In this document: positions 1,947 to 26,555 of the stretch, in pieces
Position numbering within the stretch: position 1 is the first letter of the stretch
Layout of the letters: each line of letters begins with the position of its first letter
NCBI GenBank assembly: GCA_002269645.1
Contig: NIVC01004681.1
Span: forward strand, 1 to 38,268
Length of the DNA: 38,268 nucleotides
From: Macrostomum lignano
Lineage: Eukaryota
Direction: 5' to 3'
The notes under the pieces: model-generated
Told to the model about the DNA's origin: nothing
The model's database searches: none
What the model saw: the letters and a program-made list of their open reading frames with translations, nothing else
Position numbers and translations under genes: made by a program

Positions 1947-4024
1947 AAGCTGAAATATCAAAGCTGAAGAGAGAATGAACTGAGGTATCAAGGCTTGGAG
2001 GGAATTGTTGAGATGTCAAGTCTTGGGGGGGGGGGAATTCTGTGGATTGGGGATTCCTTCCATGAGGGCTGCTTCTAATGGATATCTTTAGATAGGTGAT
2101 TCATTGGGAAATTCCATCGATGGGGGATTCTTTCGATGGAGGGTTCTTTGAATGGGGGATTCTTTAGATGAAGGATTTTTTGGCCTAGGATTTTATTGAT
2201 GGGGGATTATTTAGACGGGAGACTCTTTGAATTCTTTAGATGGAGTTTATTTGGAGTATGATTCTTTGGATTATTTGGACGGGGTTCTTTAGATGAGGGG
2301 ACTCAGATTCAGATTCTTCAGATTCAATGATTCTTTTGATGGAGGTTTATTTGGATGAGAGAATATTTGCATTATTTTGATCGGGATTCTGTGGATGGGG
2401 GATTCTTTGGATAGGGATGGATGGGGGATTCTTTAGATTGGGATGGATGGGGGGATTCTTTGGATAGGGACGGATGGGGATTCTTCGGATCGGGGATTCT
2501 ATCGATGGGGGTTTCTTTGGATGGGGATTCTCTGCATGTGAGATTCTTTGTATCGTGGATTCTATGGGTGGTGGATTCTTTGGATGGGGGATTCTTTAAA
2601 TTTGAGATTCAGTTGGGTGAAATTTTATTGCGTGGAAAAACTGTGGTTTGAGTTTGGACGAATAGCCCCAACGGGGGTTGGAATTAGATAGCTGAGGAAA
2701 TTGTTTCACTAATCTTGGTGGGGGTAGTTTCTATCAGGGGATGCTTGCTCGGAAGAGAATTCTAAGATGTCAAGATTTATAGGGGGAATTATTGAAATAC
2801 CAGGTACATGTATAAAATCTTACCTATTGGAATTAATGAGATGTGAAGGCTTAAGAGGGACTTTGGGGGATTGCAAGGCTTAAGAGGGACTTGCTGAGAT
2901 GCAAGACTTGTGGGGGAGAATTGCTGAGATTTCAAGGCTTAACGGGGAACTGCTGAGATGTCAAGGCTTTGGACGGGGATAAATTGGTAAGATGTCAAGG
3001 CGTTGGACGGGGAGAAATTGGTAAGATGTCAAGGCGTTGGACGGGGAGAAATTGGTAAGATGTCAAGGCGTTGGACGGGGAGAAATTGGTAAGATGTCAA
3101 GGCTTTGGACGGGAAGAAATTGGTAAGATGTCAAGGCTTGGGGGAATTTTATGAGGTGTCGAGGCTCGGGGGAATTGCTGAGATGTTAAGTTTTGGGGGG
3201 AATTCTATGGATTGATGATTCTTTGGATGAGGGATGCTTCTAATGGATGGATATCTTTGGATAGATGATTCATTAGGGAATTCCTTTGATGGGGCATTGT
3301 TTCGATGGAGGGTTTTTCGAATAGTTGATTCTTTAAATGAAGGATTCGTTAGATGGGGGTTATTTGGACGGGGGTTCTTTAGATGAGGGGATTCTTTGGC
3401 CAAGAATTCTATTAATAGGGGGATTATTTGGATGGGAGATTCTTTGGATTCGTTGGATGGGGATTATTCGGACGGGGTTCTTTAGATGAGGGAATTCTTT
3501 GGCCAGTTATTTCTTTGATGGCGGATTATTTAGATGGGAGATCTATGGATTATTTAGATGGGAGATCTATGGTTTATTTAGATGGGGATTATGATGTGAA
3601 TTATGATGTGATGTGATTCATTGGGGGGATTCTTTGGATATGGATGGATGGGGATTCTTTAGGTAGGAATGAATGAGGAAATTCTTTGGATAGGAATGAA
3701 TGAGGAAATTCTTTGGATAGGGATGGATGGAGGATTCTTTATATTTGGATTCTGTGGATGAGGGATTCTTTGGATGGGGATTCTGTGGATGAGGGATTCT
3801 TTGGATGGGGATTCGTTAGATAGGGGGCTTCTGTAGATCGGGAATTTCTTGAGTAGGGGATTCATTGAATGGGGAATTATTCGGATCGGTGATTCTATCG
3901 ATAGGGGTTCTTTGGATGGGGGATTCTTTGCATGTGAGATTCTTTGCATCGGGGATTTTGTGGATGGGGAAAACTGTGGTTGGAGTTTGGACGGAAAGCC
4001 CCAACGGGGGTTGGGATTGGCTAG
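1947..4024 (+). mobile_element. Non-autonomous Helitron-like segment of G-rich degenerate minisatellites, ending in a canonical 3' terminus
   Basis: Recurrent GAGATGTCAAGGCTT and GGGGATTCTTTGGAT motifs. ~2010-2690 is duplicated at ~3175-4020. Terminal hairpin CCCAAC-GGGG-GTTGGG (4000-4015), then ATTGG-CTAG|T. 5' TC end not found. Confidence 0.65.
2971..3139 (+). repeat. 34-bp tandem repeat, 5 copies (GGACGGGGAGAAATTGGTAAGATGTCAAGGCGTT)
   Basis: Units read directly starting at 2971, 3005, 3039, 3073 and 3107. Confidence 0.95.
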
Positions 4025-4639
4025 TCCATCCAATATACTAAAAATGAAAATCTTGCTTGTTTGTTTGTTTGTACGCAATCGATTAGAGAAAAAATGGCTG
4101 GACCGATTTTCATGAGACTTGCACTGTTCGATCAGAAATTTTCCCGTGACGGTACATGCATCGTGGCTAAGAAATTTCTCGATGCTAAAGGCATAAAATA
4201 TTCGAAAAACATGCTTTTTTGCAAAGTTCAAGCAAACTTTTCGACTTGAAATGCATTGTAAGAATGCTAGAGAAAAAACTGACTGGTTGAATTATGATTC
4301 TGAAATAGATTGCATCATAACTGAATTGTAACTCCGACTTGAATTGCGTCACAGTATTGAAAATGCTGTGTGGAAGCGTAGCAACAGACTTGATTTAGAT
4401 TGCGTAACCATATTGTTAACTGATACTGACTGACTGAGAAATTGTTTATGTCATAACTGCCTCGTGTGATTTACTCTATGCTTGGAGTTTTGAAACTCCA
4501 AATAGAAGTGCTAAAATTCATGTTATCAAAACGATGAGAGCTAGCCTAGAGGTAAACAGACTGACTGCTAAATGCAGGGACGATGGTTCGAATTTTTAGA
4601 GAGTTTTTTTAATTAAAGTTTTTTAACGCCAAGAAAACT

Positions 4640-5160
4640 AAAAAATCATGGAAGCGTCATGTAAAAAATCATAAAAGCGTTATGTAAAAAATCATAAAAG
4701 CGTCATGTAAAAAATCTTAGAAGCGTCATGTAAAAATTATAGAAGCGTCATGTAAACAATCATAGAAGCGTCATGTAAAAAATCACAGAAGCGTCATGTA
4801 AAAATCATAGAAGCGTCATGTAAACAATCATAGAAGCGTCATCTAAACGATCATAGAAGCGTCATGTAAAAAATCATAGAAGCGTCATGTAAAAATCATA
4901 GAAGCGTCATGTAAACAATCATGGAAGCGTCATGTAAAAAAATCATAGAAGCGTCATGTAAAAAGCATAGAAGCGTCATATAAACAATCATAGAAGCGTC
5001 ATATAAAAAATCATAGAAGCATCATGTAAAAATCATAGAAGCGTCATGAAAAATCATAGAAGCCTCATTTAAAGACTAATGAAAGTGTCATTTAAAAAAT
5101 TAAGAAGCATCATGGTAGAATAAAAGAAGCGTCATGTCAGACATGAAAGGTGTCATGTAA
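4640..5160 (+). repeat. 22-23-bp minisatellite (AAAAAATCATAGAAGCGTCATGT), about 19 good and 4 degenerate copies
   Basis: Tandem units read directly. Confidence 0.95.
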
Positions 5161-5189: not shown

Positions 5190-5919
5190 GGGAGAAAAAC
5201 TGAGACGTCAAGGCTCTCAGAGAATAACTAAGATTACGGGGGGGGGTTTCTGAGATGTTAAAGCAAAAGTCAGAAGCTACTTCAGAGTTCATGTACTTTA
5301 CTCAATTTTTTTATTACATTCTTTGTTGGCTCGCCACGGGGGGGGGGCGCTGATAGAAGAAGAGTCATGTAAAAAATAAAAGTAGCACTATGTATACATA
5401 AAAGAAAAGTCATGTCGAAGTTAAAAGATTAATTTGGGAATTGCTACGATGTCAAAGCTTGGTGGAAATCGTTATAGTGCTGTGATTCTTAAAAAAGGAA
5501 TCACTAAAATGTCAAGGCTTAGGGGAGAAGAATTGCTGAGATTTCAAGGCTTTAGGTTGGGTTAAAGTAACAGGGGATTTTTTAGATTTCAAGGTTTATG
5601 GGGGCCATCGCTGACATGTCAAGGCTTACGGGGGGAATAGCTGAGATGTCAAGGCTCACTGGGGTATAAATGAGATTTCAAGGCTAAAGCCAGAAGCTAC
5701 ATGTAGTTTATTAAAAACTTTTTGTTACATTATTTGATGCCTCCTCAGGGGAGGGATCGCTGATAAAAAAACCGTAATGTAAAAAATAAAAGAAGCTTCA
5801 TGTCGAAGTTAAGAGATTGATTTGGGAATTCCTACGATGTCGAGGCTTGCAGGGAATCGCTATAATGCTGTAGTAGTGCTATAATGACTCTTAGAGAGAA
5901 TTACTGAAATTTCAATGCT
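5190..5919 (+). repeat. Two diverged ~420-bp tandem units of the Helitron 3'-region repeat
   Basis: CAGAAGCTAC at 5271 and 5691 (offset 420). Each unit has a degenerate C-run/G-run hairpin and a CTGATA end, and resembles 12487-12711. Confidence 0.7.
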
Positions 5920-5990
5920 TTAGGGTTAGGTTAGGGTTAGGGCTAGGGTTAGGTTAGGGTTGGGGTTAGGTTAGGGTTAGGGCTAGGGTT
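5920..5990 (+). repeat. Interstitial telomere-like array (TTAGGG with TTAGG, CTAGGG and TTGGGG variants)
   Basis: Read directly. Confidence 0.95.
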
Positions 5991-6128: not shown

Positions 6129-7813
6129 GCTGCGAAACGTCCACTCGTCAACTCGTCAAGTGACCAACCCAGCAAACGGACAAAGGTAAGTATTTCGGTT
6201 CTGCAAACCACTTTTCTAATGATTTTTATACTTTATATAATTTTCTGAAAGCCTGTAGTAACACTTTTTAGAATCAAAATAAATGAATATTGTAATTGGT
6301 TTTCTGTAAGCATTAAGTAACTTTTTCTAGACTATAAAAGTGGTTAGGGTTTTCTAGACTATAAAAGTGTCATCCAAAATCTATTTTTTTCCTCAATCTG
6401 GTTGAATTGCTTTCCCAGTGGCAAACGACTGATGATGATGATGTGCCTTGCGAGCCTCACCTTTCGGCCTCACCTTGCGAGCCTCTGGTGCCTCTGGTGC
6501 CTCAGCGTGGCTCGGCCTCACCTCAGCGGCCACCGCATTCGGCCTCGGCCAGTGCCAGCAGTGCCACAACGGTGCCGAAGTGCCACAGCGGTCCAACCGG
6601 CCGTTCTTCAACGGTCCAACCGACCGGAAATTCTCATGAAGCGGTGAGTGTGTCACAATATTCACGTCATTCCTAAAGAATTTAGCAGACAGTAAATTTA
6701 ATGTATTTTTGTGTCAGAAAGTCAAACATTATTTCGCGTAGTAAGTTTTTCAGGAAGGGCACAATTCTTTTAGTAATCACGTTCAGATCAATACTTGTAA
6801 CCGGAAGTTTTTAATAAAAAGTATTCAGAACGCGATCATTAAGATTTTCAAGGGCAAGAACTTGATTTCTATTTATACTTTATATAATTTTCTGAAAGCC
6901 TGTAGTCACACTTTTTAGAATCAAAATAAATGAATATTGTAATTGGTTTTCTGTAAGCATTAGGTAACTTTTTCTAGACTATAAAAGTGGTTAGGGTTTT
7001 CTAGACTATAAAAGTGTCATCCAAAATCTAAATTTTTCCTCAATCTTGCTGAAATGCTTTCCCAGTGGCAAACCAATGATGATGTGCCCTGCGAGCCTGT
7101 GGTGCCTCTGGTGCCTCAGGTCTCCGGTGACTCGGCCTCACCTCAGCTGCCATCACATTCCGCCTCGGCCAGTGCCACAACGGTGCCAAGGAATTGTCCA
7201 ACCGGCCGTGTACATTCACATGAAGCGGTGAGTGTGTCACAATATTCACGTCATTCCTAAAGAATTTAGCAGACAGTAAATTCAATGTATTTTTGTGTCA
7301 GAAAGTCAAACATTATTTCGCGTAGTTTTTCAGGAAGGGCACAATTCTTTTAGTAATCACGTTCTGATCAATACTTGTAACCGGAAGTTTGAAAGTATTC
7401 AGAACGCGATCATTAAGATTTTCAAGGGCAAGAACTTGTAACTTGATCTTGATCTTAAAATTGGTTTCTTTTCCGTATTGGTTCGTGCATTTAATGTTCA
7501 ATTTTGTTTCATTTAGGATTTGAAGACGCTTGCGTGTAGAACGCACTTTAATTTACTGAATTCTGCGCAAAGTGATCTGGCGCGCAGGATTCAGTACGCT
7601 TCAAGCGAATTCGCAAATTGGACAGAAGACGAGAAGGGCCAGTTTTTACGGGCGTTTAAAAAATTCGGCAAAGAGTTTTCGAAGATCGCCGCCGCCATCA
7701 ATAGCAAGACTATTGCACAATGTGTGGCATTTTATTATAGCTCAAAGTATGAGCCTAAATTTAAGAATATGTACGCCGCCAAGAAGCGAGCAGCCAGGCG
7801 GAAGCGTCGATGA
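6129..7813 (+). CDS. Spliced gene for a small nuclear protein with a corepressor-type SANT domain (MIER/RERE/MIDEAS/NCoR class). Exons 6129-6185, 6419-6643, 7066-7227, 7517-7813.
   Basis: GT-AG junctions, all phase 0, no internal stop. Last exon reads WTEDEKGQFLRAFKKFGKEFSKIAAAINSKTIAQCVAFYYSSK, then a basic tail KKRAARRKRR and AATAAA at 7955. Start is unresolved: CCAG|GCT at 6129 is either an acceptor or a damaged ATG-GCT. Confidence 0.75.
6225..7438 (+). repeat. Tandem duplication of an intron+exon unit (6225-6863 vs 6872-7438)
   Basis: Near-identical intronic sequence at offset ~647. The duplicated exons (WQTTDDDDVPCEP... and WQTNDDVPCEP...) differ by in-frame indels. Confidence 0.95.
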
Positions 7814-8088: not shown

Positions 8089-9781
8089 ATGCGAGCTTTG
8101 GAATCAGAAAACGCCTGGCTAAAAGAAATGCTGCGAATTCAGCACGTCCTCATTATAAGCCAACGCAGGACCCTAGAATCGGTTCAAGGTTCTCCAAACC
8201 CAAAAATGCCTAGTGTAAGCCGTAAAATTTTAGATACCAATTCTTAATTCCATATTTTAACTAAGCATTCATAGTCTTTCTGCGAAAGCTTTAAATAAAA
8301 AAAGTAGTCAATTTACAAACTTATAAAAAAGTTTATAAGCACAATCAAGTCGTTTAGTGTTCAGTGTCAAATAATCTTTTTATTATCCAACACGCTTTTT
8401 CCAAGTAAGTTTTCCATGCTTTTAATGGCAAATGAATCAAAATTACATGATAACTTTAGCTAAATATATTTATATAACCTCAAATATAACCTGTCCAGCC
8501 AGCTGAAGGTGCCGGTGCCGGTGCTGCCGGTGCCACTATGACGGCCGCCTACACTGCCACATCCGCTGCTACCGCCACCTCCGCTGCTACTTCCACCACC
8601 GCCACCTCCGCTGCTACCTCCACCACCACCAGCTCCGCTGCTGCCGCTGTAAGTATTTTGTATCTGCTAGTATTCACGTTTACTTACTTGTAGCAGATCT
8701 ATATAAGCGGTATTCAGCACGCTATGCAGAAAGATAGCATAGAAACCCTGGCGCAAATTTTACGAGCTCGTAGTATAGTATAGCATGGCATAGCATGATA
8801 CCTTGCCCCAGATTCTACACAGGCCTACGATATCGTATAGATGTAAATTAGCAAGATGTACATTAATGTTCATTCGATCTAAATACTACTCAATATAGAC
8901 ACCGGACGCGCGTCGGTCCGTTATTAATGGATCCTTGCCTGGAGGGCCATTATTCGATGTATGTAATAAATATTTATTGTCTGGTTTAATTGTTATTTTT
9001 CGTCTTTTATCTACTACTTTTAAAGTACTTTTACTTATACCCGTATTATTTTCTTTTATACCTTTTGTATTTTGAGTCCTAAATCGTAAGTCCATAAGCT
9101 CTTAACCTCGTAGTTGAGGTTATACTTTAAGTCTCTACATGCTCATACAAGCCTCATACATACTTTAATTGAAAAAATATAGGTAGACCTCGATGCCTCA
9201 TTCGGCAGTGGCGACGTCGGCAGTGGCAGTGGCAACGACGAAGGCCCTGCCGACGTCACTATCCGCGGCCCTACGCGGGGAGCTAGCTTAAAGGGTGCCC
9301 GAAAGGCAGCAGGACAAGCAGAAGTCCTCCGGCGGCTCCTTAACAACGATGACTCAGCAGTAACTGTTAGTGCTACCCGGAGCAAAGGCCGCGGAGCTTT
9401 TGCATCGTGTGCCCTCGCCAGAGGAGCATACGTATGCGAGTATGCAGGTAAGCTTCTTAGCAAGACGGAATCCGACACTCGCTACGTCGAGCTCGCCGAG
9501 GCCGACAAAGACACGTTTTTTTATTTAACTTTGATTTCAATGGCCGGGAATATGCTATCGACGCCACGGACACCGATCGCGTCGGAAGGTTCTTAAATCA
9601 TTCTCGGACAAAAAAAAACTGCCGAGTAGTCACCACCGGTGTCCAATGTCCGGGAGGCGTGATTCGACCGGCCCTATATTTCCAGACTACAAAATATGTT
9701 CCGAAGGGACGTGAACTTTTATTCGACTACGGCCCTAGGGACGCGGAAACTCTGGAGAGTTGTAAGTGGCTGAACGATTAA
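8089..9781 (+). CDS. SETD8/PR-Set7 (KMT5A)-like SET-domain lysine methyltransferase. Exons 8089(or 8074)-8214, 8499-8648, 8899-8958, 9183-9781. One 1-nt frameshift in the T7 run at 9516-9522.
   Basis: Motifs KGRGAFA, CEYAG, YAIDAT, GRFLNHS, ELLFDYG and KWL match the SETD8 family. All introns are phase 0 GT-AG. AATAAA directly follows the stop. About 311 aa if the frameshift is corrected. Confidence 0.85.
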
Positions 9782-10229: not shown

Positions 10230-11338
10230 TAAAGTTCCCGGTCTTTTTATATTATTTCTAGAACCTGAAGGGAGAATAATGCTCCAGACATATACTCTAG
10301 AAAATCAGTACACTTTCTTAGAAGGTCGGTATACTGATATGAAGTTTCTTCACTTTAGCTTCTGGCCATCCTAGGTTTTGGTAGTCGGACTTTCAGTTGT
10401 GTAAACATTCTGAAATCGTGTATAGACCTCCTAAAGCGAAAAATATCTTAAGTAGTTGTCAAACATTTTTCTATGCGGCCAAGTGAATCTCGACTTGGCT
10501 GTTGTGCGCTCTATTATGCTTGCCCATACAGTTAAGTAGTAAGTTTTTCAGCTCAAAGGTTAGGTACTATTGGGGCATTCAACTGCATGCTCTTGTTCTT
10601 AACCATACAAGTCCATGTTATACACTTTATTATGAGTAGCGCAATGAACGTTTGAGAGTCCTGAAGGTAACTCTCACCCTCGTCAGGAGAACCGACGTAT
10701 GCCTATGTCAGAGTAGTAAGTTTTTCAGGGGACATGCAATATCTGCCGTGTCTTGACCATACTGTCTTTAATGCCTCGTATAAGAATGTTTAAAGTCAAT
10801 TGTTACTCTGAGAATATATCAAGGAACTTATAAAAGTATTTTAGTAGAAATATGAGGGGCTATTCGCCCCTTACGAGGGGCATTTCGCCCCTCATAATTA
10901 TAAGCCCATCTTGACTACTAAATATCGTCGCTCAGTAGAGTGATAAGCGTAATAAAAAGACTGAGCGCACTCTTGCGATAAAGCAAAGATATGATATAAA
11001 TTTCCCTGTCTTTTTATATTATTTCTGGAATCTGAAGAGAGAATAATGCTCCAGACATCTACTCTAGAAAATCAGTACACTTTCTTAGAAGGTCGATATA
11101 CTGATATGACGTTACTTCACTTTAGCTTCTGGCCATCCTAGGTTTTGGTAGTCGGACTTTCAGTTATGTAAATGTGTTCAAAGTCAATTGTTACTCAGAG
11201 AATATAGGAAAGGAACTTATAAAAGTGTTTTAGTAGAGATAGGAGGGGCTATTTGCCCCTCAAGAGGGGCATTTCGCCCCTCATAATTTTAAGCCCATCT
11301 TGACTACTAAATATCGTCGCTCAGTAGAGTGATAAGCG
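10230..11338 (+). repeat. Diverged direct duplication (10230-10412 ~ 11001-11173; 10786-10949 ~ 11176-11338), with a ~370-bp segment present only in the first copy
   Basis: Shared strings such as GAGAATAATGCTCCAGACA...GTAGTCGGACTTTCAGTT and GAGGGGCATTTCGCCCCTCATAAT. Confidence 0.85.
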
Positions 11339-12320
11339 GATAATTCAGATCTAAATCTGAATCTCACCCTATTGGAAAAGAGGCACCCTGAGATCTCACT
11401 GTAGGATTGTAAGATTAGATAGTCCGTATAATATATGTTAGATGTGACCCCTATCTCATACCCGAAAAACGTATCTAAAGGTAAATCTCACCTAATCGGA
11501 AAAGTCTCACCCTGAGATCTCGGATTAGGATGGTATAGAAAATCCTAATGACAAGGTGACCTCTATCTCATACCTTGGAAAAGCGTCGAAAGTAAATGTC
11601 ACTCTATTAAGCTTTTTGGGTTAATTCCCCCCTGACCGCCTACGGAGGTCAATGGACCTCAAATAGTGGCTTAGGTTGATAGAGAAACGAAAGAATTTAT
11701 AGATTGTATTGCGGAAAAAAAAAGAAAAAAATACATGTATTCTTATGGTGAGGGGCTTCTCGCACATGGCGAGGGGCTTCTCGCGCCCCCTGGAGGGTTT
11801 AATAATTTTAAGCCCATCTTGACTACTAAATATCGTCGCTCAGTAGAGTGATAAGCGGATAATTCAGATCTAAATCTGAATCTCACCCTATTGGAAAAGA
11901 GGCACCCTGAGATCTCACTGTAGGATTGTAAGATTAGATAGTCCGTATAATATATGTTAGATGTGACCCCTATCTCATACCCGAAAAACGTATCTAAAGG
12001 TAAATCTCACCTAATCGGAAAAGTCTCACCCTGAGATCTCGGATTAGGATGGTATAGAAAATCCTAATGACAAGGTGACCTCTATCTCATACCTTGGAAA
12101 AGCGTCGAAAGTAAATGTCACTCTATTAAGCTTTTTTGGGTTAATTCCCCCCCTGACCGCCTACGGAGGTCAAGGGACCTCAAATAGTGGCTTAGGTTGA
12201 TAGAGAAACGAAAGGATTTATAGATTGTATTGCGGAAAAAAAAGAAAAAAATACATGTATTCTTATGGTGAGGGGCTTCTCGCACATGGCGAGGGGCTTC
12301 TCGCGCCCCCTGGAGGGGCT
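11283..12320 (+). repeat. Near-perfect 519-bp tandem duplication
   Basis: Units start at 11283 and 11802 and differ by a few substitutions and homopolymer lengths. Confidence 0.95.
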
Positions 12321-12406: not shown

Positions 12407-12486
12407 TTAGGGTTAGGGTTAGGGTTAGGGTTAGGCTAGGGTTAGGGTTAGGGTTAGGGTTAGGGTTAGGCTAGAGTTAGGGTTAG
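12407..12486 (+). repeat. Interstitial (TTAGGG)n array with TTAGGC/CTAGGG variants
   Basis: Read directly. Confidence 0.95.
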
Positions 12487-13021
12487 AAGGTTGACAGATA
12501 TTTTTAGATTTCCAAGGCTTATTGGGGGCATTGCTGAGATGTCAAGGGGGGAAGTTGATATGTTAAAGCTTGTGGGGGGGGGAATTACTGACATTTCAAG
12601 GCTGACAAGTTTTGACAGGAGATTTTTTAAGATTTCAAGGATACCTGTAGCTTATTAAAAAAACGTGTATTGCATTTCTTTGGCTCCCCAACGGGGGGCG
12701 TAGATTGCTAGTTAAGAAGCTACTTTTAACATCCACTTTATTTTTAAAATTTACTTTAGAAAGGTGCTTTGATCTGCTCAGGTCTAGAAGAGACAAAACA
12801 CCAGGAAACCAGAGTAGCCAGGGAAGATTTAAATATTTTTATTATACATGATTGCTTTAAATTTGCTTTTAAATTTTATAAGTGACACATTTCAAAGATA
12901 TGCCAAAATCAGTCTGTTCTAAAAGGGCATTTTCCAAAAATCCAGTAACATTTTTATGGAATCCAGGAACATGTTTATCGAATCCAGTAACATGTAACAA
13001 GTAACATAGTAACAAGATCTG

Positions 13022-13874
13022 ATGCTTCAGAATTCCGCGCTAGATTTGCTGGCCGACGCAGCTGTCATGGTGGCAGCTGCAGACAGTACAGGTGACGCAC
13101 CAGGAGTTGGCACCACAAGCGCACCACAGTGCACCACAAGTGAAGCTGTGGCTTCAACCTCTCCGACATATGGGTGGTTATTCGCTTTGCCTAATTTTTT
13201 TAAAAACGTCGGTGAGTCATTTTGCTCATTTGTGCGTTTGGTACCTTGGTATAAAAGACATTTGGTAATACTCGGGCCTAGTGAGTATGGATGGTGATGT
13301 GCCGGACATCGAGGACGTCGAGGAAGATCATCGAGAAGTAGACATAAAAGTGTCATTCATTCGTAACCCCGCAGCTCTGAAGAATGACGAAAATGTCGTC
13401 ACCATTGGTCGGGACATATCATGTACGGAAGTGTTGATGGAAGGAAATGATCCCAATATCCTTCTGTACTCACGAAGGCATTTGGAGATAAAAAGAGTAA
13501 GTCTTATTTCACAGTCGGGACTCCTGAGAATCGGATGAGTCAAGATGAGTCAATCGAACCAAGTTATCCGTTGTTTTGTAGCATAACGCTGGCGGCACTC
13601 CCGTGACGGTGATAAAAGACCTGAGCAGCAATGGCACATTCGTTAATGGCCAAGCAGTTGGTGAGTTTAGATACTTTGCCTTACACTTGTTAATTATACT
13701 TTACTTGCTTTGGTAGTAGCATGGTATACGCAGAATGTAAACGACGGTTTCTTTTCTTAATATTTTTTCTACTCAGGGCGCAATCAGATTCAACGGCTAA
13801 GAAGCGCCGACATCATTTCGCTGGCACTCGCGGCCAACAAGGCCTGGATATACGTTGAAACAAGCCGATTTTAA
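13022..13874 (+). CDS. Stand-alone CHK2-type FHA-domain protein, 193 aa, no kinase domain. Exons 13022-13211, 13282-13496, 13582-13660, 13777-13874.
   Basis: Spliced translation reads VTIGRD...YSRRHLEIKR|HNAGG...IKDLSSNGTFVNGQAVG...IISLALAANKAWIYVETSRF*, with the GR, SxxH and NGTFVN motifs of the CHK2 FHA. Exon lengths sum to 582 nt in frame. Exon 1 boundary is less certain. Confidence 0.85.
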
Positions 13875-15306
13875 AAGCTGCATTTTATGCATTGTATGCA
13901 TTTACATAAGCATATAAACACTTTCTCAAAAATAAGTTCAGATAGTGTAATTGCATGTTTATCCATCGTCAATATCCGTACATCCGGCCTTCGCCCCTCC
14001 TTAGCTCTAATTTTGCGCTAACTGTTTAAATATAACTAGCTGACCACTATGATTTACCATCGCCCATTGTCCGAAAGTGAATGAATAAACATATGCCTGT
14101 AGCATCAAAATGTCCGCTGTACACCAACAGCAGGTAATATAGGAGGGAAAAGGTTATTCTGTTGGCAGTCTTGCATTATTTTAATGACGTCGCAGTTACG
14201 CTACTACTACTAATAAGCAGCCTGAGCAACCTAGAAGTTGGATACTAAGTATTTTGTAGAAGCGTAGAAGCGATTCCCGTCGAAATCCGGGGTCAATAGG
14301 TCACTCTATGGGACCAGTCTGTTGTGCAATACTTAGCCTAGGCAAACGCTATAAAACGACTGAGGGAATTATTACGCTTTACTTGGCGCGTTGCCAAAAA
14401 AAACGGCGGCATCTACCGGCGCGACGCGAGCGTCTATACACACTTTAATAAATACCCAATCGTCTGACGGTAGCGGCGCCACTTTGGCGCCAATAGCGCC
14501 GAAGCTGGAGCCTTGGAAACTTGCAACTCTAGCCCTAAAAATATTGAGGGAATTATTACACTTTGTGGCAACGGCTGCCAGTCGACAGCGGAAGCACATC
14601 TAGCGACGTGTGTGGCGTCGTTAGAGCGAGCACAGCCTGGACTACATAGTGGGCTGGTCGGCCAGTCAGAATAGAACAGCTAAAAACTTCTATACTACTT
14701 ATGGTAGCAAGTAGCGGGTTTCTTAGGTGTAAAACGGCTGAAGATAGTTTAGCTTGCGTCGGACAGTCTCGCGACCGTCAAATTCCGACTATACGTGTCG
14801 AAATACATCGGACTAGGTGTCTTTGTTTTTTTCAAAGTGTCTCTGCCAAAATTTTGTACTTCGGGGTCTAAGGGATTGACTGGCCACTTTCCGGAAGTCT
14901 GTCGCGGCGGAATCTACCACGAGCAGGTGGCACCCAATTCCGATGAATGCAATTCGATAGAGCATCACTAGAGCTTTCCAACGACACCAAGAACGTCCGG
15001 AAATACCCAGGGGAAGGCTGGCTAATCGCACTCAAAGTGTCCAGCGTACCTCCATGCGCAGAAACGGTGAGGGGGCAATTACACTTTGCGGGAACGGCTG
15101 CCAGCCGGAAACGGTAGCACATCTATTGATGAGACAAACAGCATCCGACGCATGGATAGATGCTCTATCACTTCTTAAATTCTCACCTGCCCAGACATCG
15201 GTCACGAAAGTGATTTCCGAGTGCCCCTTAATTTTGATGGATCTCGGCCGGACTTGACCCCCTGTACTCTTGGATAAATGTAGAAGCGATCCCCGTCGAA
15301 ATCGAT

Positions 15307-16095
15307 AACCCTAACCCTATTTAACCCTAACCCTATTTAACTCTAACTCTATTTAACCCTCACCCTTTTTAACCCTAACCCTATTTAACCCTAACCCTAT
15401 TTAACCATAACCCTATTTAACCGTAACCGTCTTTAACCCTAACCCCATTTAACCCTAACCCTATTTAACCCTAACCCTATTTAACCCTAACCCTATTTAA
15501 CCCTAACCCTATTTAACCCTAACCCTTTTAAACCCTCACCCTTTTTAACCCTAACCCTTTTAAACCCTCACCCTTTTTAACCCTAACCCTTTTAAACCCT
15601 CACCCTTTTTAACCCTAACCCTATTTAACCCTAACCCTATTTAACCCTAACCCTATTTAACTCTAACTCTATTTAACCCTCACCCTTTTTAACCCTAACC
15701 CTATTTAACCCTAACCCTATTTAACCATAACCCTATTTAACCGTAACCGTCTTTAACCCTAACCCCATTTAACCCTAACCCTATTTAACCCTAACCCTAT
15801 TTAACCCTAACCCTATTTAACCCTAACCCTATTTAACCCTAACCCCATTTAACCCTAACCCTTTTAAACCCTCACCCTTTTTAACCCTAACCCTTTTAAA
15901 CCCTCACCCTTTTTAACCCTAACCCTTTTAAACCCTCACCCTTTTTAACCCTAACCCTATTTAACCCTAACCCTATTTAACCCTAACCCTATTTAACCCT
16001 AACCCCATTTAACCCTAACCCCATTTAACCCTAACCCTATTTAACCCTAACCCTATTTAACCCTAACCCAATTTAACCCTAACCCCATTTAACCC
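15307..16095 (+). repeat. Telomere-like 16-bp satellite (AACCCTAACCCTATTT), about 49 units with higher-order structure
   Basis: Strict 16-nt period. Variant units AACTCT, AACCAT and AACCGT recur after exactly 20 units (320 bp). Confidence 0.97.
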
Positions 16096-16340: not shown

Positions 16341-16350
16341 AGTGTCCGAG

Positions 16351-16608
16351 TTAGGGTTAGGGTTAGGTTAGGATTAGGGTTAGAAGGTTGACAGATATTT
16401 TTAGATTTTAAAGGCTTATTGGGGGCATTGCTGAGATGTCAGGGGGGGGGGAAGTTGATATGTTAAAGCTTGTGGGGGGAATTACTGACATGTCAAGGCT
16501 TACAAGGTTTGACAGGAGATTTTTTAAGATTTCAAGGATACATTTAGCTTATTAAAAAAACGTGTATTGCATTTCTTTGGCTCCCCAACGGGGGGCGTAG
16601 ATTGCTAG
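16351..16608 (+). mobile_element. Short TTAGGG array plus a second copy of the Helitron 3' terminal segment
   Basis: Nearly identical to ~12455-12711. Similarity stops exactly after CTAG|T (16605-16609). Confidence 0.8.
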
Positions 16609-17990
16609 TGAGAATACTCAACTTTGGCCCACCTTCGGGCTCCTAGTCTTTCTTTAGACTTGCCGTCAGACTGAGTTCTGACCCATTCGTCTATAAGACG
16701 AATCCCTGCCGGTCCGCGGTCTGTTACCGCCAAGTTATCTTCAGCTCCCCAAGTGAGCTCGCCTATCGGCCAGCGGTCTGACACCACCCAGCATCATCAG
16801 CTTCGCCTGATCTACACCAGCGCCTCGTCGCTTCAGCGCATCGCCGCTTCACTGTCCGCCTGACTGCAGCCTACAGCCGCCCTCGGTCACTCCGCCTCTC
16901 TCTCTCTCTCTCTCTCTGTGCAGCTGCCGGTAAGTTCCTGTTACTGATTTGTGCTCTAATTGCATTTGCTTATTTGTCCATTGTCTGATTAGAGAGCTGA
17001 GCCAGTTGTGATACCGTACCTTTTGCTGTATTTTTACTCAATAGTGAAGCCGCCTAATTGCCTGATTATTTGCCTAAGGGCCGAATTATTAACTATTAAC
17101 TAACCTCATCATTATTCACTCTTTCACCATCATTTCACTCATGGCTTGTTAAGCCTTTCTTCCGGGGTGGCAAAGCATAGGGAAGTTTGGGTAAGCTAAT
17201 GGCCTCTCTCCGTGCAAAGCCCGCCTGTGCGAGTGCGTGCCGCGGGTCCGTAAGTGCGTGCAGTAGAGGGTATTAGCGAGTCTTGGCACAGAATGGCAGT
17301 AGGAAGGTTGAAACCCCATGCTAACGCGTCCCTTCGCCCTAAGCAATCTAAACTATAGACAGTACATGTTCGCCTCATACTACTCTTAGTAATCAAAGTC
17401 GCAAGTCAGCCTCGCTCACAGCCACAAAGGATCCCCTGCTGAGAAATCCTCCAGATTGAGCCCAGAGTTTCCGATCATGCCCCAAGCAGAGTCCCTGTAC
17501 TCGGCTGCGTGTGTCTCCCCTGTTAGCCTAAATCTCCTGGTAACCATCCCAGGCGGGGCTCTAGCCTCGAGAGGTCTGGTAGAAAGATCCAGGTGCGCCA
17601 GGTCACATAGAGTGGTGGCAGCCACTCGGTCATACCATGACCGAGTGACCAACTATTGCACCTTGGCTACAGGTGGGGTCCATGTGGGTCCTTGGCCCTC
17701 TGGGCACGAAGCGCTACCAAAGCTACTAATCATGTGGGCGGGACAGTCTGGTGCTGGAGGACCGTCAGGTCATTGCCCGGTCATACGCAGCCTACGGTCA
17801 TTGCCCCCTCTAGCCATGCGTTCGTCTCTCAATAGGAGCGGACCGGCGACAAGGGCGGTTACATCAATTGCAATTAAATTGGCAATCAGCTTGTCAAAAC
17901 CTGCAAGTGACTTGTAATCAATTTGCAATAATTGCCCAATCCTTACAATCAGATTGCAATTTTGGACAATTTCCCACAATTTCGAGTGTC
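16609..17990. mobile_element. GC-richer non-coding element arm with (CT)11, a splice-donor-like GTAAGT and the right imperfect inverted repeat
   Basis: (CT)n at 16896-16917; CCG|GTAAGT at 16930; inverted similarity of 17840-17990 to 866-1005. Confidence 0.4.
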
Positions 17991-20518: not shown

Positions 20519-23500
20519 GTGACCGAACCTAACCAAACTGTTTCTGCCCCTGCTGCTGCTTACGGTGAGAGGGGTTTTCCTCAAAGGGCTGTACTTGAGG
20601 TGGTTTTCGCAGCCTTCAACAGAATTATGGAAGTTATTTTGGAGCCGCCGCTCACTGACTGGGAAGTAAGCCAGCTTGCTATCTGGACAGTGACGGAGGC
20701 TCTGGCGATTATCCTTAATTCTGGTGGAACTGCAGCCAGGGTAGGTGAAGCCGAAGCCACTTCGGTGAGCGGAGGCGGACCCGTGCCCTGAGCAATTATC
20801 ATAAAAATTTTGAATTGAACTATGGCTGTTAATAATAAAAAATAATTCTCTAAATTCTACCCTAAACATAGGGCACCTTAACTGCAATAAATTAAGCAAT
20901 AAAATGCATGAAATTATAATGTGGTTGCACAATGAAGATATAGACATTGGTCTTTTCTCAGAAACTGACCTCAAAAATGATGACAGGTTCTTTGTTCAAG
21001 GGTATGCGATTATTAGATTTGACATCCCTGACTGTCGAAGAGGACTTGCAATTGCTTATAAAAATAACTTGAAAATTTCGAATGTCAAAAAGTACTATGA
21101 CAACTCTCACCATGAGTTCATAAGCCTTGCTGTCAACCCCAACAATAACCCTAGTAGTACTCTAAGAATTTCCCTTTTATATAGAGCCCCAACCCTGATC
21201 GCATTACCACTGCTACACTTAAACAGCTACTCTCCCAACCTAGAACTCTTCTTATTGGAGAGCTCAACTGTCGCCATCTTATGCTGGGTGGGGACTGTGT
21301 AGAAAATTTTCACGGCAAGCAGCTATTTGAATGGCTTAATAATCATCCTGACCCTCCTTTCATCCTCAATTCCTATGGTGACTGCACCAGAATTAATAAT
21401 GGGGGGCAACACTGTAGGTAACGTCCTGGATCTATGCATTTGCACCCCAGATCTTGCCAACTCAATTAGTGAGGTGCTGGTAGGTGATGACCTCGATAGC
21501 GATCACCTACCTATTATTATTAAAGTCTCTTTAGACCCCAGCTCCAAAAATAGCCCCAAACCACTAAAAGGCTTATGGCTTACAGATTGGGAGGCCTTCA
21601 AATACGCCCTTCAAGATAAGCTTGAAAAGTGTAATTTGATCCAATCCCGAATCTCTACCCCTGAAGACCTTGACAGCGTGGTTGATAAGCTCACGGAAAA
21701 ATTTCGTGAAACTATAGAGGAAGTAGTTCCAGATAGAGATCCTAGAGAACAACTCCCTCCTGACATTATTGAAAAAATTAAGCACAGAAAGCTTAGAAAA
21801 CTTTTTAAGAAAACTAGAACTGACACATTTAGGGTTCAAGCAAATCAAGCTGCCAAAGAAATTAGGATAGCAATCAGAATGCACAGGTACAGAAAATTCG
21901 AAGACCTATGCAAGAAAATTGCCAAAACGAGTTACAGAAGGGAGCCGCGTCAATTCTGGATTGATTTAAGAAAATGACAGGACAAGAAAATAAGGGGTTA
22001 CCGCTGAAACTGAACAAGAAACTGCCAATCTGTTTCAAGATTTCCTAAATGATCAGATGCAGCCCCATCCTGACACCAATTCCCTACTCTACGAGGAGGT
22101 TATGGCCAACAAAGATCATGAGATCTTTCGACCCCATGATAGCATGGTTAGAGCTCTCACCTACCATCGGGACAGGGCTGACCCCGACGACCCCGATAGG
22201 GAAGACACTTAATCAGACATTCTTAACATCCTTGACATTGATGTACTAATGGAAACAAAAAATCTCAGAACTGGGGGTGCCCCTGGTCCTGACAAAATCC
22301 CAAACATTGTACTCAAGCGCGGGCTTAGCCCTGACACTGTAATACCCATAGCAAAAAATTTTAATTCAAGCTTTCTTCTGGGCTACTTCCCCAAGGCCTG
22401 GTAAAAGGCAACCATTAAAATGATCCCAAAGCCTAAGAAATCTAGGCAAGACATCAATAACTATAGACCAAATAGTTTAACCTCCTGCCTGGGAAAGCTT
22501 TACGAAAAAATAATTGCCAGAAATCTCAGAATGATTTTGGAAAACAAGGGGCTTTTAAACGAAGACCAATGTGCGTACAGACAAGACCACTGTACGTTTG
22601 ACAACATTGTGCGACTCACTGACGATATACTAAAAATGAACCAATGGAGACATGCGACCCTTAGTGTATTCTTTGACGTTAAAGGAGCCTTCGATGGCGT
22701 CTGGCACAGCTACCTTAGGCATAGGATCCTTGTAAGCAACCTGCCTCACAATGTGATCCGTATCATCTCCAGCTACCTTGAGGATAGGGGGATTTACATT
22801 CAGATTGGAGGGGCTATCAGCAATGGTTTCCGACCCGCCGCTGGCGTCCCGCAAGGTGGGGTTTTATCCCCGATTCTCTTTATTATATACTTCAGCTCGA
22901 TCCCGATCCCGCGTGACATCAAGTTTAAGAAAAGTCAGTTCGCAGACGACCTTGCTGTCTGGGCAAGTGCCAGGACGTCGGTAATGACGGCTAAGAGGCT
23001 GAACAGCTATCTAGTCGTCCTGAAAAAAGGGCTAGATGATGTAGGTATTACCATCAATCCTAACAAAAGTAAGACGGTAGCTTTTTTCAAGTTTAAGAGC
23101 CATTATTCGACTGGCCCAGCCAGGCCGCCGCTTAAATAAGGACAGGATCTCATCCCTTATCATGACTCGGTCACCTTCCTTGGAGTCACCCTCGACAAAG
23201 ACTTAAGCTACAAGCAGCATATCTCCAAGACTGCAGGCATCACCATCGCCAAGCTTGAAGCCATGAGGAGAATAACTCGCAATACTAGGATTTCGCAACT
23301 GGCGCTTCGGCTGCTCTCCTCCTCAAAGTCTTACATTGAGAGTGGCATGACCTACGGAGCGCCCATACTAGTCAACGCTTCTGATGCTCTCCTCCAGAGA
23401 TTCCAACTCCTCCAAAATCAAGCCCTTAGAATCGCGCTTGGTGCCCCCAGGTACATTAAAATTAGCTATCTACATGAAACTACGAATATGCCCAGGTTCA

Positions 23501-23646
23501 AAGAGAGAATATGGAACCTGGGCCTAGGATGGTTCAAAAAAGTTCTGCTCACAGGGGTGCATAACTTCGATATTGACCTCAAAGAATGGAGCAGACCAGG
23601 GTTTAGAGAACGCGTTACTACTAAATTTAGAAAAGCCAAAAAATAA
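20519..23646 (+). mobile_element. Degenerate non-LTR retrotransposon (Jockey/I-group-like): probable ORF1 tail (20519-20791) and ORF2 APE endonuclease + reverse transcriptase (~20822-23646)
   Basis: APE motifs LNIGHLNC, FSET, GELN, LDL, SDH. RT motifs PGPD, IPKP, YRP, FDGV, GVPQGGVLSP, QFADD, FLGVTLD. C-terminal QNQALR. Several frameshifts and in-frame stops. No RNase H seen. Confidence 0.92.
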
Positions 23647-23835
23647 GCAATAAAAGCCATATAAACTAAAAACTAACTCACCTCGAGACGGCGCCGGAGA
23701 GGTTCCTCAGTCGCGGGCACGACCTGATAAAATCTGTCCAGACTGCTCATTTAATTATTACTAGGAGCTAAATTATTTTACTAACATCATATAATATTTT
23801 CATTTTATCTGACATTGACAATGACAATGATGCTT

Positions 23836-23874
23836 CCGGCGCCTCAGCCAATGAATTAGGCTCTTACGCCACTA
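23836..23874 (-). mobile_element. hAT-like terminal inverted repeat (right-end orientation)
   Basis: GGCTCTTACGCCACT and CCGGCGCCTCAGC are exact reverse complements of blocks at 27764-27778 and 27784-27796. Confidence 0.6.
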
Positions 23875-24204
23875 GTGAAATAAGGTTTCCAGGTTGGGAG
23901 TGTACTAATGTACACTTAAATCCTAATTGGATTTAAGTCATCCTTCATCCTCCACAGTCATCCTAATTGGGACTAAGAGGACTGTACATCGAGCCGGGCA
24001 AGCGGCGCCAGTCAGGCCGAGAGCGGGCCCTACCCCCGACCCTCAGAGCGTACGCCTACCCCAAACCCAATAGGCTTATCTAAACCTCCCCGGGGCTGGC
24101 AGGGGTTAAGTGATTTGTTTTAATTTGTTTTATTTAGTTTAACTTTTTTAATTGCTCCTATTTGTATTACTGAATAATGCTGCTGTTTTATAGATTGTTT
24201 TATT

Positions 24205-25133
24205 CCAAACTCGACACTTATATCGACACCAAACGCGGCCAGTATAGCTGACCAGGCAATCAACAATAACAAAGCTACTCACCAAGAAAATACTCACAGA
24301 CTGGCAGCTGGTATAGCCGACCAAGAACAAAGTAGCAGCCAACCTAAATTCAAGATAACTCCAGTAGTATTTGAGACTGCTCCAGAAGCCAAAGATCCAC
24401 TCAAGTTTGAGTGGTTTCTCAATATAAACTTTCCAAACATCAGAATTCAATCGGTCAAGAACATATATCATGGCGTTGGCTTCTGCGTGTTAACAACGAG
24501 CGAAAAGGACATGAACGCGCGGCTGACATCACCACTCATTGAACCGGAAATAAATGGACAAACTGTGGATCGACGACTACCAAGAAAAAGACCAATTAAG
24601 CAAGGCGATGATGGCTAATTTTTAAACCTCATAGTGGTGTTATACAAGCCATCTCCTACTTCAAATATAAAAATGAGGAGGCTGAGGCGGACTGTGATGA
24701 TGCTTTAGCCTACCTTATGGAAATCATCAACATAGATGTAACTATGGCAATAAGCAGTCTCAGGTCTGGGGGTGCACCTGGGCCAGACAATATCCCAAAC
24801 ATTGTTCTCAAAAAGGGCCTGAGACTAAACTCTATCAGAATTATCACAAAACTTTTCAATACCTGCTCCCTTCTGGGCTACTACCCGCGGCTCTGGAAAC
24901 AGGGTATTGTCAAAATGATTCCCAAACCTAATAAACCAAAACATCAAGTAGATAGCTACAGACCAATTTGTCTAACCTCATGCTTGGGTAAACTTTATGT
25001 GAAAATACTTGCTAGGAATATTCGAACTATACTGGAAAACCTGAATATTATCAATGAAGATCAGTGCGCCTATATACAAGACCATTGCACCTTTGATAAC
25101 ATTGTCAGAATCACCGATGATGTGCTTAAGATG
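24205..25133 (+). pseudogene. Second, internally deleted LINE copy: ORF1-like open frame (24205-24618) and RT N-terminal fragment (~24700-25133)
   Basis: The RT fragment (GAPGPDNIPN...IPKPNK...YRPICLTSCLGK...QDHCTFDNIVR) is paralogous to 22270-22640. The ORF1 assignment is a weaker inference. Confidence 0.8.
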
Positions 25134-26149
25134 TTGCAGCTCACCCCAGTGGCACCGATATTATCGGTAGAGATGTACCAATTGGGACCAATAATATCAG
25201 CTTGCGAGCATGTCGTGTGTCAAGACGACACGATTTCTACCCGAAAATATCATACTGAGCTATGCACTTAAATAGCATAGGGGCCAGTATATTATACCGG
25301 CTAGCTAACGAATCAAACGGCTCAGATTTAAATTTGTTTGACAAAATGAAAAAATTGACAAGTGATTGACAGAAAATGCAATGATGGAATTAATCCAATT
25401 GCATCTTGCACTTGCAGGAGGGAGCATAAATAGCAAATTTAATCAAACAAAATATTGTTGGGTCATTTGTACTTCATATTAGCTTAGGCCTAGTTATCCA
25501 ATAAGACCAACAATCAGCATTATTCCTTGCCTACCTATTCTGCTATCCATATGAATACTATACTATTTAATAAATTGGCAGTTTATTACAGTTCTTGATT
25601 TTCATATTTCTTGTAGCCTCAAGGTCATTTGCATGCAGAGTACTTAAATTTTTAAGTACTCTTACCTAGTACATTAGAAAATCAGAAATCCCTGGCTATA
25701 TAACATATTGGCTATAGCTTAAACTAGCTATTATTATTTTCAACTAGCCAGATTAGCTATTTCACAGAGCAAGCCATACAAAACCAATTATTCAATATTT
25801 CCTTTTAAAATGTCTAGCCAATTACCTGGATTTTCCCTAGCCAACTCTTTGACTACCTGGCTGCCTATTCTCATAATCTAGCTCTTCTTGGTCTCCTCCT
25901 AGTCTATTCTCTCTGACTGCTCTTCCTAGCTTGCTCTCGTCTCACTAAGCCTACTGCCATTAGCCTACTCTGCCTAGCCTACCCTCCCTAACTTGCTCCC
26001 CTAGCCTACTTCTCTTGATCTGTACTCCATGGCTAGGTTTCACTAGCCTGACCATATCCTCCTAGTCACTTTTCCTGTCCATTTCTTTGGCTACCCCCTA
26101 GCCTATTCCTCATATCTTGCTATTCTGCCTGGGTCACTGGCCTACTCCT

Positions 26150-26555
26150 ATGTCCAGCTCTGCTTGCCTTGCTCCCCTGGCCTGCTCCCAGCTCCCCCTG
26201 ACCTGCTCCCAGCTCCCCCCTGACCTGCTCCCAGCTCCAACTGGCCTGCTCCGCTGGTCTGCTACCCTGACCTGCTCACCTGGTCTGCTTCCCTGACCTG
26301 CTCCCCTGGTCTGCTTCCCTGACCTGCTCCCCTGGCCTGCTCCCAGCTCCCCCTGGCCTGCTCACCTGGTCTGCTTCCCTGACCTGCTCCCCTGGCCTGC
26401 TCCCAGCTCTCCTGGCCTGCTCACCTGGTCTGCTTCCCTGACCTGCTTCCCTGACCTGCTCCCCTGGTCTGCTTCCCTGACCTGCTCCCCTGGCCTGCTC
26501 CGAGCTCCCCCTGGCCTGCTCCCCTGGTCTGCTCCCCTGACCTGCTCTCCCTGGC
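26150..26555. repeat. Pyrimidine-rich 13-14-bp minisatellite (CCTGCTCCCCTGG / TCTGCTTCCCTGA variants)
   Basis: Read directly; grades into degenerate copies back to ~25850. Confidence 0.9.

Follow-up and report, generated by a model that had tools for sequence, protein, structure and literature searches.

An FHA gene without a kinase domain

The window analysed here is a 38,268-nucleotide (nt) stretch from the flatworm Macrostomum lignano (GenBank assembly GCA_002269645.1, contig NIVC01004681.1, positions 1 to 38,268 of the forward strand), which consists of repeat-rich cellular animal DNA of low coding density with many satellites. Reading and translation of the sequence reveal an intact four-exon frame on its forward strand at 13022–13874, which opens with an ATG at 13022, has in-frame stops immediately 5' of that codon, closes with a TAA at 13872–13874 and encodes an FHA domain of the Chk2 type that is followed by no kinase domain. 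The initial annotation had drawn this gene with exons at 13022–13211, 13282–13496, 13582–13660 and 13777–13874, separated by GT..AG introns of 70, 85 and 116 nt and encoding 193 amino acids. That frame is indeed intact, in register and free of stops and frameshifts, except that its exon 2 most likely starts at 13375 and not at 13282. In our corrected model the acceptor of intron 1 lies at 13374, the 489-nt coding sequence is free of stops and frameshifts, all six splice dinucleotides are canonical, and the protein has 162 amino acids.

Exon 1 (13022..13211, +) carries the ATG, a 48-amino-acid Ala/Ser/Thr-rich disordered N-terminus without serine/threonine-glutamine (S/TQ) motifs, the strand beta-1 (YGWLFAL) and the segment PNFFKNV, and ends in phase 1. 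It is followed by the homology-supported intron 1 (13212..13374, +; 163 nt, GTGAGT...CCCCGCAG, phase 1), which corresponds to the Chk2 intron designated I1 below. Exon 2 (13375..13496, +) encodes ALKNDENVVTIGRDISCTEVLMEGNDPNILLYSRRHLEIKR, which includes G-R and S-x-x-H of the pocket, and is followed in phase 0 by intron 2 (13497..13581, +; 85 nt, phase 0), the ancestral Chk2 intron I2. Exon 3 (13582..13660, +) encodes HNAGGTPVTVIKDLSSNGTFVNGQAV(G), which includes N-G-T, and gives way in phase 1 to intron 3 (13661..13776, +; 116 nt, phase 1), which is Chk2 intron I3. Exon 4 (13777..13874, +) encodes (G)RNQIQRLRSADIISLALAANKAWIYVE, then TSRF and the stop codon. The first AATAAA 3' of the stop (14084..14089, +; 210 nt away) is a motif match that may serve as a polyadenylation signal.

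Comparison with the Chk2 gene of M. lignano indicates that intron 1 most likely ends at 13374 rather than at 13281. The M. lignano Chk2 acceptor (..TTCGCAG/AC TTG AAA.., the slash marking the splice junction) has a counterpart in the window, ccccgcag/, that ends at 13374, and both are in phase 1. Use of this acceptor gives (A)LKNDENVVTIGR, in the phase of the M. lignano exon (D)LKEDEKVVIGR, and the two genes correspond codon for codon at the junction (G/CT CTG AAG AAT GAC GAA in the window versus G/AC TTG AAA GAG GAC GAA in M. lignano Chk2). It also gives the spacing of beta-1 to the GR motif and beta-2 that is seen in other Chk2 proteins, the pattern being seven residues, a split codon and then L.. 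(PNFFKNV/A-L in the window, LGSSFVAH/D-L in Lingula and GFWNL/D-C in Hypanus). The exon 2 start at 13282 of the initial annotation, that is, the acceptor at 13281 (+) with its 70-nt intron, would insert 31 residues (VSMDGDVPDIEDVEEDHREVDIKVSFIRNPA) that are found in 0 of 89 Chk2 sequences, and was therefore rejected. In ~14% of shuffles an extension of 31 codons remains open by chance alone (p ~0.14). Because both forms are in frame, alternative use of the 13281 acceptor may occur.

The spliced product matches the Pfam FHA family (PF00498) with E=2.4e-12 and 47.5 bits against a cut-off of 20.7, and its best solved structure by sequence is the FHA domain of human CHK2 (1gxc, E=5e-7), ahead of Rad53 FHA1, Dun1 and MEK1. 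In an exhaustive HMMER search of 1.84 billion representatives the top match was M. lignano Chk2 itself (E=5.5e-21, 58% identity over residues 95–190; UniRef A0A1I8I977, NCBI BOX15_Mlig002936g1 on NIVC01002576.1), with which the window protein has the 12-residue word DLSSNGTFVNGQ in common. The animal matches that follow, from a sea spider, a dragonfly and a tapeworm, are all Chk2 among those looked up by name. A word-indexed protein search with the 193-amino-acid model returned nothing, which is a failure of sensitivity since the exhaustive search found M. lignano Chk2, and negatives from that type of search are not to be taken as absence.

The phosphothreonine (pThr) pocket residues that the initial annotation reported as complete (G-R, S-x-x-H, N-G-T and N) are all kept: in the 162-residue numbering, G75-R76, S96/H99 and N121-G122-T123 occupy invariant or near-invariant Chk2 alignment columns, as does the Asn of TFVNG. 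An AlphaFold model of the 162-residue protein places an FHA sandwich at residues 48–158, with a predicted local distance difference test (pLDDT) score >90 over residues 50–158 and ~51 for the disordered N-terminus (residues 1–47), and the complete 11-strand FHA beta-sandwich is thus predicted to be kept. The six top Protein Data Bank (PDB) fold matches of this model are human CHK2 (1gxc with a TM-score of 0.91 and a root-mean-square deviation of 1.3 A), ahead of MEK1, Rad53 and the rest, although a model built from an alignment of Chk2 sequences leans toward the CHK2 fold.

Descent from the macrostomid Chk2 lineage and absence of the 3' part

We placed annotated Chk2 proteins exactly on the genomic loci of Lingula (brachiopod), Pocillopora (coral), Taenia (tapeworm), Hypanus (ray) and M. 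lignano and mapped their introns. Intron I1 (phase 1, before (D/E)-L) and intron I2 (phase 0, after HFxIxR) are present in all five species and in the window gene. Intron I3 (phase 1, NGxKV/G) is present in Lingula, Pocillopora, Taenia, M. lignano and the window gene and absent in Hypanus, and intron I4 (phase 1, NK/A) is present in Lingula, Pocillopora, Taenia and Hypanus and absent in both M. lignano Chk2 and the window gene. The phase 0 intron after SRRHLEIKR, the only one for which a Chk2 position had been proposed, is I2 and agrees with the intron after HFxIxR in five of the five mapped species, including a vertebrate (Hypanus, KRHFRIVR/EE). We take I2 to be the human CHEK2 intron at c.444/445 (c.444+1). 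Because the intron 1 acceptor has been corrected to 13374, all three introns of the window gene, and not only one, now lie at ancestral Chk2 positions and in ancestral phases. A processed retrocopy, which would be an intronless copy of an mRNA, is thereby ruled out, and the earlier suggestion of an origin at the DNA level gains two further introns. The loss of I4, common to the window gene and M. lignano Chk2, links the gene with the Chk2 lineage of macrostomids, and we read the gene from these sequence comparisons as a DNA-level derivative of macrostomid Chk2.

A neighbor-joining tree joins the window FHA domain to M. lignano Chk2 as its sister (84% bootstrap), and exon 3 retains 85% nucleotide identity to M. 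lignano Chk2 across 53 nt. Sequence, fold, the three shared intron positions and this sister relationship together support derivation of the domain from CHK2, as first proposed, rather than from another FHA family. When the window was compared with the 22.5-kb M. lignano Chk2 locus (NIVC01002576.1) by blastn and tblastx, FHA exons alone were recovered and no synteny or common repeats were found, so the window is probably not that locus.

Two features of the UniRef model of M. lignano Chk2 deserve mention here. It holds a 33-amino-acid Arg/Gly/Ser-rich insert that is encoded within a 9.7-kb intron (5543–5647 of the fetched NIVC01002576.1 locus) and absent from the NCBI model, and which is probably an annotation artefact. 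It also has one residue, not seven, between beta-1 and I1; its exon 1 lies beyond the contig end and the donor of that exon may be mis-called.

Homology to Chk2 ends at ...KAWIYVE, where the last strand of the predicted fold also ends (...IYVE), and the window protein then closes with TSRF and the stop, four residues past the last FHA strand as had been described. Relative to M. lignano the break falls in the middle of an exon, since the last FHA exon of that gene runs uninterrupted through FDAILQKQYPACVTEHYTVSKTLG to a donor 25 codons further on, after TLG. No remnants of the Chk2 linker or kinase rose above shuffled controls 3' of the stop, in three frames or at the nucleotide level, and tblastn with human and M. 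lignano Chk2 detected no kinase exon on either strand of the 38 kb, that is, over 13 kb on the 5' side of the gene and 24 kb on its 3' side, which bears out the description of the gene as kinase-less. The SQ/TQ cluster is likewise missing, as stated in the initial annotation: there are zero SQ or TQ dipeptides in the whole protein and zero in its 49 N-terminal residues, whereas at least one S/TQ precedes the FHA domain in 75 of 82 full-length Chk2 proteins. The M. lignano segment 'PIVGTQ' pairs with 'PGVGTT' in the window protein, in a weak but colinear alignment. Lacking a kinase domain, a linker and an S/TQ cluster, the protein could neither undergo activation by ATM nor act as a signaling kinase.

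Such a structure could also arise from an incomplete view of a normal Chk2 gene, with its kinase exons lying beyond a very long intron or lost to an assembly error, or with a stop that is a long-read indel artefact. M. lignano Chk2 does contain the 9.7-kb intron mentioned above, the stop sits in a TTTTAAAA run, and at least one probable homopolymer indel is present in the window, in the T7 run at 9516–9522 within a neighbouring SET exon. Because that exon is broken by an apparent one-base error or mutation, the effect of single-base changes on the FHA gene matters. One T gained or lost in the TTTT run still leads to a stop within ~15 codons, and all three frames stop within ~20 codons. Onward splicing from exon 4 was considered and rejected, as the sole GT before the stop, in ACGTTGAA, is a very poor donor. 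Since the frames all terminate, traces of a kinase are lacking and the donor is poor, the kinase-less state is not a single-base artefact. The early end of similarity at YVE, the lack of any S/TQ motif and the position of the junction in unique sequence, not in a repeat prone to misassembly, point the same way, and we consider an incompletely seen Chk2 gene quite improbable.

A subtelomere-like, duplication-prone setting

The FHA gene lies inside a 3.9-kb unit flanked by 263-nt direct repeats, each of which begins in a run of TTAGGG. The left copy (12453..12712, +) starts in the array at 12407–12486 and ends 310 nt 5' of the ATG, and the right copy (16350..16609, +) is 93.5% identical to it at a spacing of 3897 nt. 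Repeat analysis placed TTAGGG arrays at 5920–5990, 12407–12486 and 16350–16383; in Macrostomum, chromosome ends are labelled by the telomere probe (TTAGGG)n (PMC5068713). The direct repeats contain a 29–34-nt satellite that also occurs at 2829–3204 and 5589–5685. On the 3' side of the gene there is a degenerate repeat with a period of ~520 nt, and then, between the gene and the right repeat, a telomere-derived 16-nt satellite (TAACCCTAACCCTATT, ~49 copies, 15178..16095, +), with the 49-copy array placed at 15306–16095. Elsewhere in the window, satellites are dense at 2100–4000, 4639–5137, 5589–5990, 10800–12320 and 26170–26555. The kinds present are a G-rich 16-mer array, a 23-mer array (22 copies), the 29–34-mer 'AATTGCTGAGATGTCAAGG' beside TTAGGG, the ~520-nt tandem repeat and a C-rich 13/39-mer array, and a unit of ~640 nt is duplicated in tandem at 6225–7438 (84% identity). 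The satellites and TTAGGG arrays suggest a subtelomere-like, duplication-prone region. A setting of this type favours an origin by segmental duplication, and it is also one where dead gene pieces accumulate.

Few genes accompany these repeats. A SET exon resembling KMT5A/SETD8 (PR-Set7) lies at 9183–9781 (+) (Pfam SET, E=2e-14; PDB 3f9w, E=8.5e-18); with an acceptor at 9182 and lacking an in-frame ATG, it is expected to have further exons upstream, and its frame is broken by one base in the T7 run at 9516–9522, where T8 would mend it. The break either marks the exon as a pseudogene or reflects a homopolymer error of long-read sequencing. A search with this KMT5A-like SET sequence returned a single weak match of 33%, so the gene is unannotated in that database or its species absent from it. 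A Myb/SANT open reading frame (ORF) at 7520–7813 (+) (PF00249, E=2e-10, with a weak DUF7952 match) has the SET exon 1.4 kb downstream. A decayed non-LTR (long terminal repeat) retrotransposon occupies 20904–25271 (+), with endonuclease-like ORFs at 20904–21977 and RVT_1 ORFs at 22420–23646 that are split by stops; a second reverse transcriptase fragment (24717–25271) is ~70% identical to 22235–22638. Two further ORFs, at 37653–38117 (+) (FDFAENYSC..QDATQSAYW) and 33625–34500 (+) (zinc-finger-like, CKSCEKK...H..H), look transposase-like by eye and have no significant Pfam match. No Rfam families were found in the window, and exact look-ups of two of its ORFs returned no match.

The initial annotation had the gene 'captured' from the genome of a 'host', which would mean that a virus or mobile element holds a stolen FHA module with which it overrides the host checkpoint. 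The location of the gene between direct repeats and the retention of its introns, as in DNA-level capture by, for example, Helitron- or Pack-type elements, would fit this explanation. Yet the repeat-bounded unit comprises the gene and tandem repeats, with no viral or transposase gene inside it and no viral or transposon hallmark gene around the FHA gene. The 263-nt repeats were considered as the ends of an LTR element or a transposon and set aside, as they are modules of telomere repeat plus satellite, unlike LTRs or terminal inverted repeats, and these modules recur at 2829–3204 and 5589–5990. No relatives of the FHA protein were found in 2.9 million viral contigs (IMG/VR), and the matches in metagenome contigs were confined to generic FHA domains, mostly of bacterial type, at 34–47% identity. 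The TTAGGG arrays, satellites, decayed non-LTR element and cellular SET and Myb genes characterize the window as cellular animal DNA. Since the window is cellular and no viral relative was detected, 'host' and 'captured' are without basis, and we regard such a theft as highly improbable.

Candidate FHA-only modulator or duplication relic

Our data point to a truncated flatworm Chk2 paralogue that arose at the DNA level, either because the duplication was incomplete or because the 3' part was lost. It retains the first coding exon, the three exons of the FHA domain and the introns between them, and it ends inside an exon that normally runs into the linker and kinase. The predicted product combines a disordered N-terminus devoid of ATM-type S/TQ sites with an FHA domain of the Chk2 type that is complete. 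Were the gene expressed, its free FHA domain would bind the pThr motifs read by the FHA domain of Chk2, namely the phosphorylated SQ/TQ segment of Chk2 and the pThr partners of Chk2, and would itself be neither activated nor able to phosphorylate. Because it would occupy these pThr targets without being activatable, competition with Chk2 dimerization and docking could damp or re-route checkpoint signaling. Isolated FHA domains and kinase-less Chk2 isoforms act in this way. Over-expressed on its own, Rad53 FHA2 reportedly acts as a dominant negative. Activation of CHK2 proceeds through pThr68-dependent dimerization that involves the FHA domain (PMC11639082), and kinase-defective Chk2 splice variants are described as dominant negative in the title of Berge et al. 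(2010, PMID 20080130, as cited in PMC4693264). On these grounds we tentatively read the gene as an expressed FHA-only modulator or decoy, a reading whose chances we put only slightly short of even.

Several known systems bear comparison with the window gene. With Chk2/Cds1/Rad53, and most closely with M. lignano Chk2, it shares a 58% identical FHA domain with its pThr pocket, the layout of the first coding exon, and three introns at identical positions and phases with I4 lost; it differs in having no kinase domain, linker or S/TQ cluster, and from M. lignano Chk2 also in a longer terminal branch and in a changed NNDEI motif, both described below. Partial human CHEK2 pseudogenes, comprising the 3' exons 10–14, have reportedly been dispersed to several chromosomes. 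Like those copies, the window gene is a DNA-level partial copy with introns in a duplication-rich region, but they represent the kinase-encoding 3' end and are considered non-functional, whereas the window copy is a 5' part with a start codon, a complete domain and an open frame. It resembles the kinase-less or kinase-defective human CHEK2 isoforms and isolated FHA dominant negatives in being a catalytically dead FHA fragment that could still engage in pThr-dependent contacts and, by analogy, would be expected to interfere with the wild-type kinase, yet it differs in being a separate locus, whereas isoforms and constructs derive from one gene. SRGAP2C (PMC5435084) and NOTCH2NL (PMC11956922) are likewise incomplete DNA-level copies that comprise an N-terminal interaction domain with introns, end after a few foreign residues and lie in duplication-prone, repeat-rich locations, and the proposed action, binding the targets of the parent, would be similar. 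As in SRGAP2C, the interaction domain lies in an open frame that ends soon after the breakpoint (complete FHA, TSRF, stop). In contrast to these truncated parent antagonists, and to the human isoforms and constructs, the window gene is known from sequence.

The rate at which the gene has changed is informative about its possible fate. Over 94 codons the window gene and M. lignano Chk2 show a dN (non-synonymous divergence) of 0.37 with synonymous sites saturated, and identities of 66%, 73% and 38% at codon positions 1, 2 and 3. A pairwise dN/dS (the ratio of non-synonymous to synonymous divergence) cannot split selection before the truncation from selection after it. Mean identity to 87 other Chk2 proteins is 33.9% for the window FHA domain versus 40.7% for that of M. 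lignano Chk2, the latter being the closer in 83 of the 87 comparisons, and in the neighbor-joining tree the terminal branch of the window sequence (0.45) is ~2.5 times as long as that of M. lignano Chk2 (0.18), a difference that a change of constraint would lead one to expect. Among Chk2 sequences, 17 columns are conserved in 90% or more, and the window protein departs at three of these, of which two are common to M. lignano and one is its own. As only one of its changes in the core columns is its own, the substitutions on the window branch have spared the domain core, and the window lineage appears to be faster-evolving yet under constraint at the protein level.

These same data also bear on whether the gene could be a non-functional relic, that is, a young partial duplicate or decapitated Chk2 remnant in telomere-repeat and satellite DNA that is intact through its youth and either unexpressed or translated into a product without a role. 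The repeat-rich setting would suit a relic, with the 3.9-kb unit between TTAGGG-initiated repeats, the 1-nt frameshift in the neighboring KMT5A-like SET exon and the decayed retrotransposon close by. So would the break in homology mid-exon with no trace beyond it, which resembles a random breakpoint, the degraded NNDEI motif on a longer branch, and the lack of any similar annotated or transcript-derived protein among 15 billion sequences. However, the absence of any disabling change from the 489 coding nt and the six splice dinucleotides implies less than ~4–5% neutral divergence (a rough estimate based on ~0.14 disabling events per site for each unit of such divergence), and the excess change on the window branch exceeds this bound and spares the conserved core. 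The break also leaves a complete domain with a four-residue tail, and the loss of all S/TQ sites would be unexpected in a very recent copy of a working Chk2. We take a relic seriously as an explanation only a little less likely than that of an FHA-only modulator.

The reading of the gene as an FHA-only modulator has several points to answer in turn. The Chk2-conserved NNDEI motif is degraded to SADII, and the window-specific departures from conserved columns cluster there. The low dN/dS and the avoidance of the core may predate the truncation, having been acquired as a full-length Chk2 in a fast-evolving species. The satellites, telomere-type repeats, decayed elements and frame-shifted KMT5A-like SET exon around the gene are typical surroundings of dead fragments, and the protein, viral and metagenome collections searched yielded neither an orthologue nor another copy of the truncated gene. 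Transcription of the FHA-only gene, for its part, is putative.

Beyond modulation in general, a stand-alone Chk2-derived FHA protein might have become fixed in a flatworm lineage noted for regeneration from stem cells as a competitor that sequesters phospho-SQ/TQ and thereby tunes or raises the threshold of the Chk2 checkpoint in stem cells or the germ line. We regard this more specific role as unlikely; if it were true, the gene would be a hard-wired counterpart of the dominant-negative Chk2 isoforms of human cells. Our full-text literature searches on Chk2 in Macrostomum and on kinase-less Chk2 FHA proteins turned up no regulator of this kind. The finding is real but much less exotic than the title of the initial annotation, which spoke of a possible checkpoint decoy, suggests. 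As a relic, the gene would be an unremarkable outcome of duplication in repeat-rich DNA, useful mainly as a marker that three introns and one intron loss date to the macrostomid Chk2 lineage. Should it be expressed, it would amount to a natural inhibitor or adaptor with a gene of its own, made from the recognition domain of Chk2 itself, offering a simple handle on checkpoint strength in a regenerating animal and a non-primate case of a truncated duplicate that antagonizes its parent.

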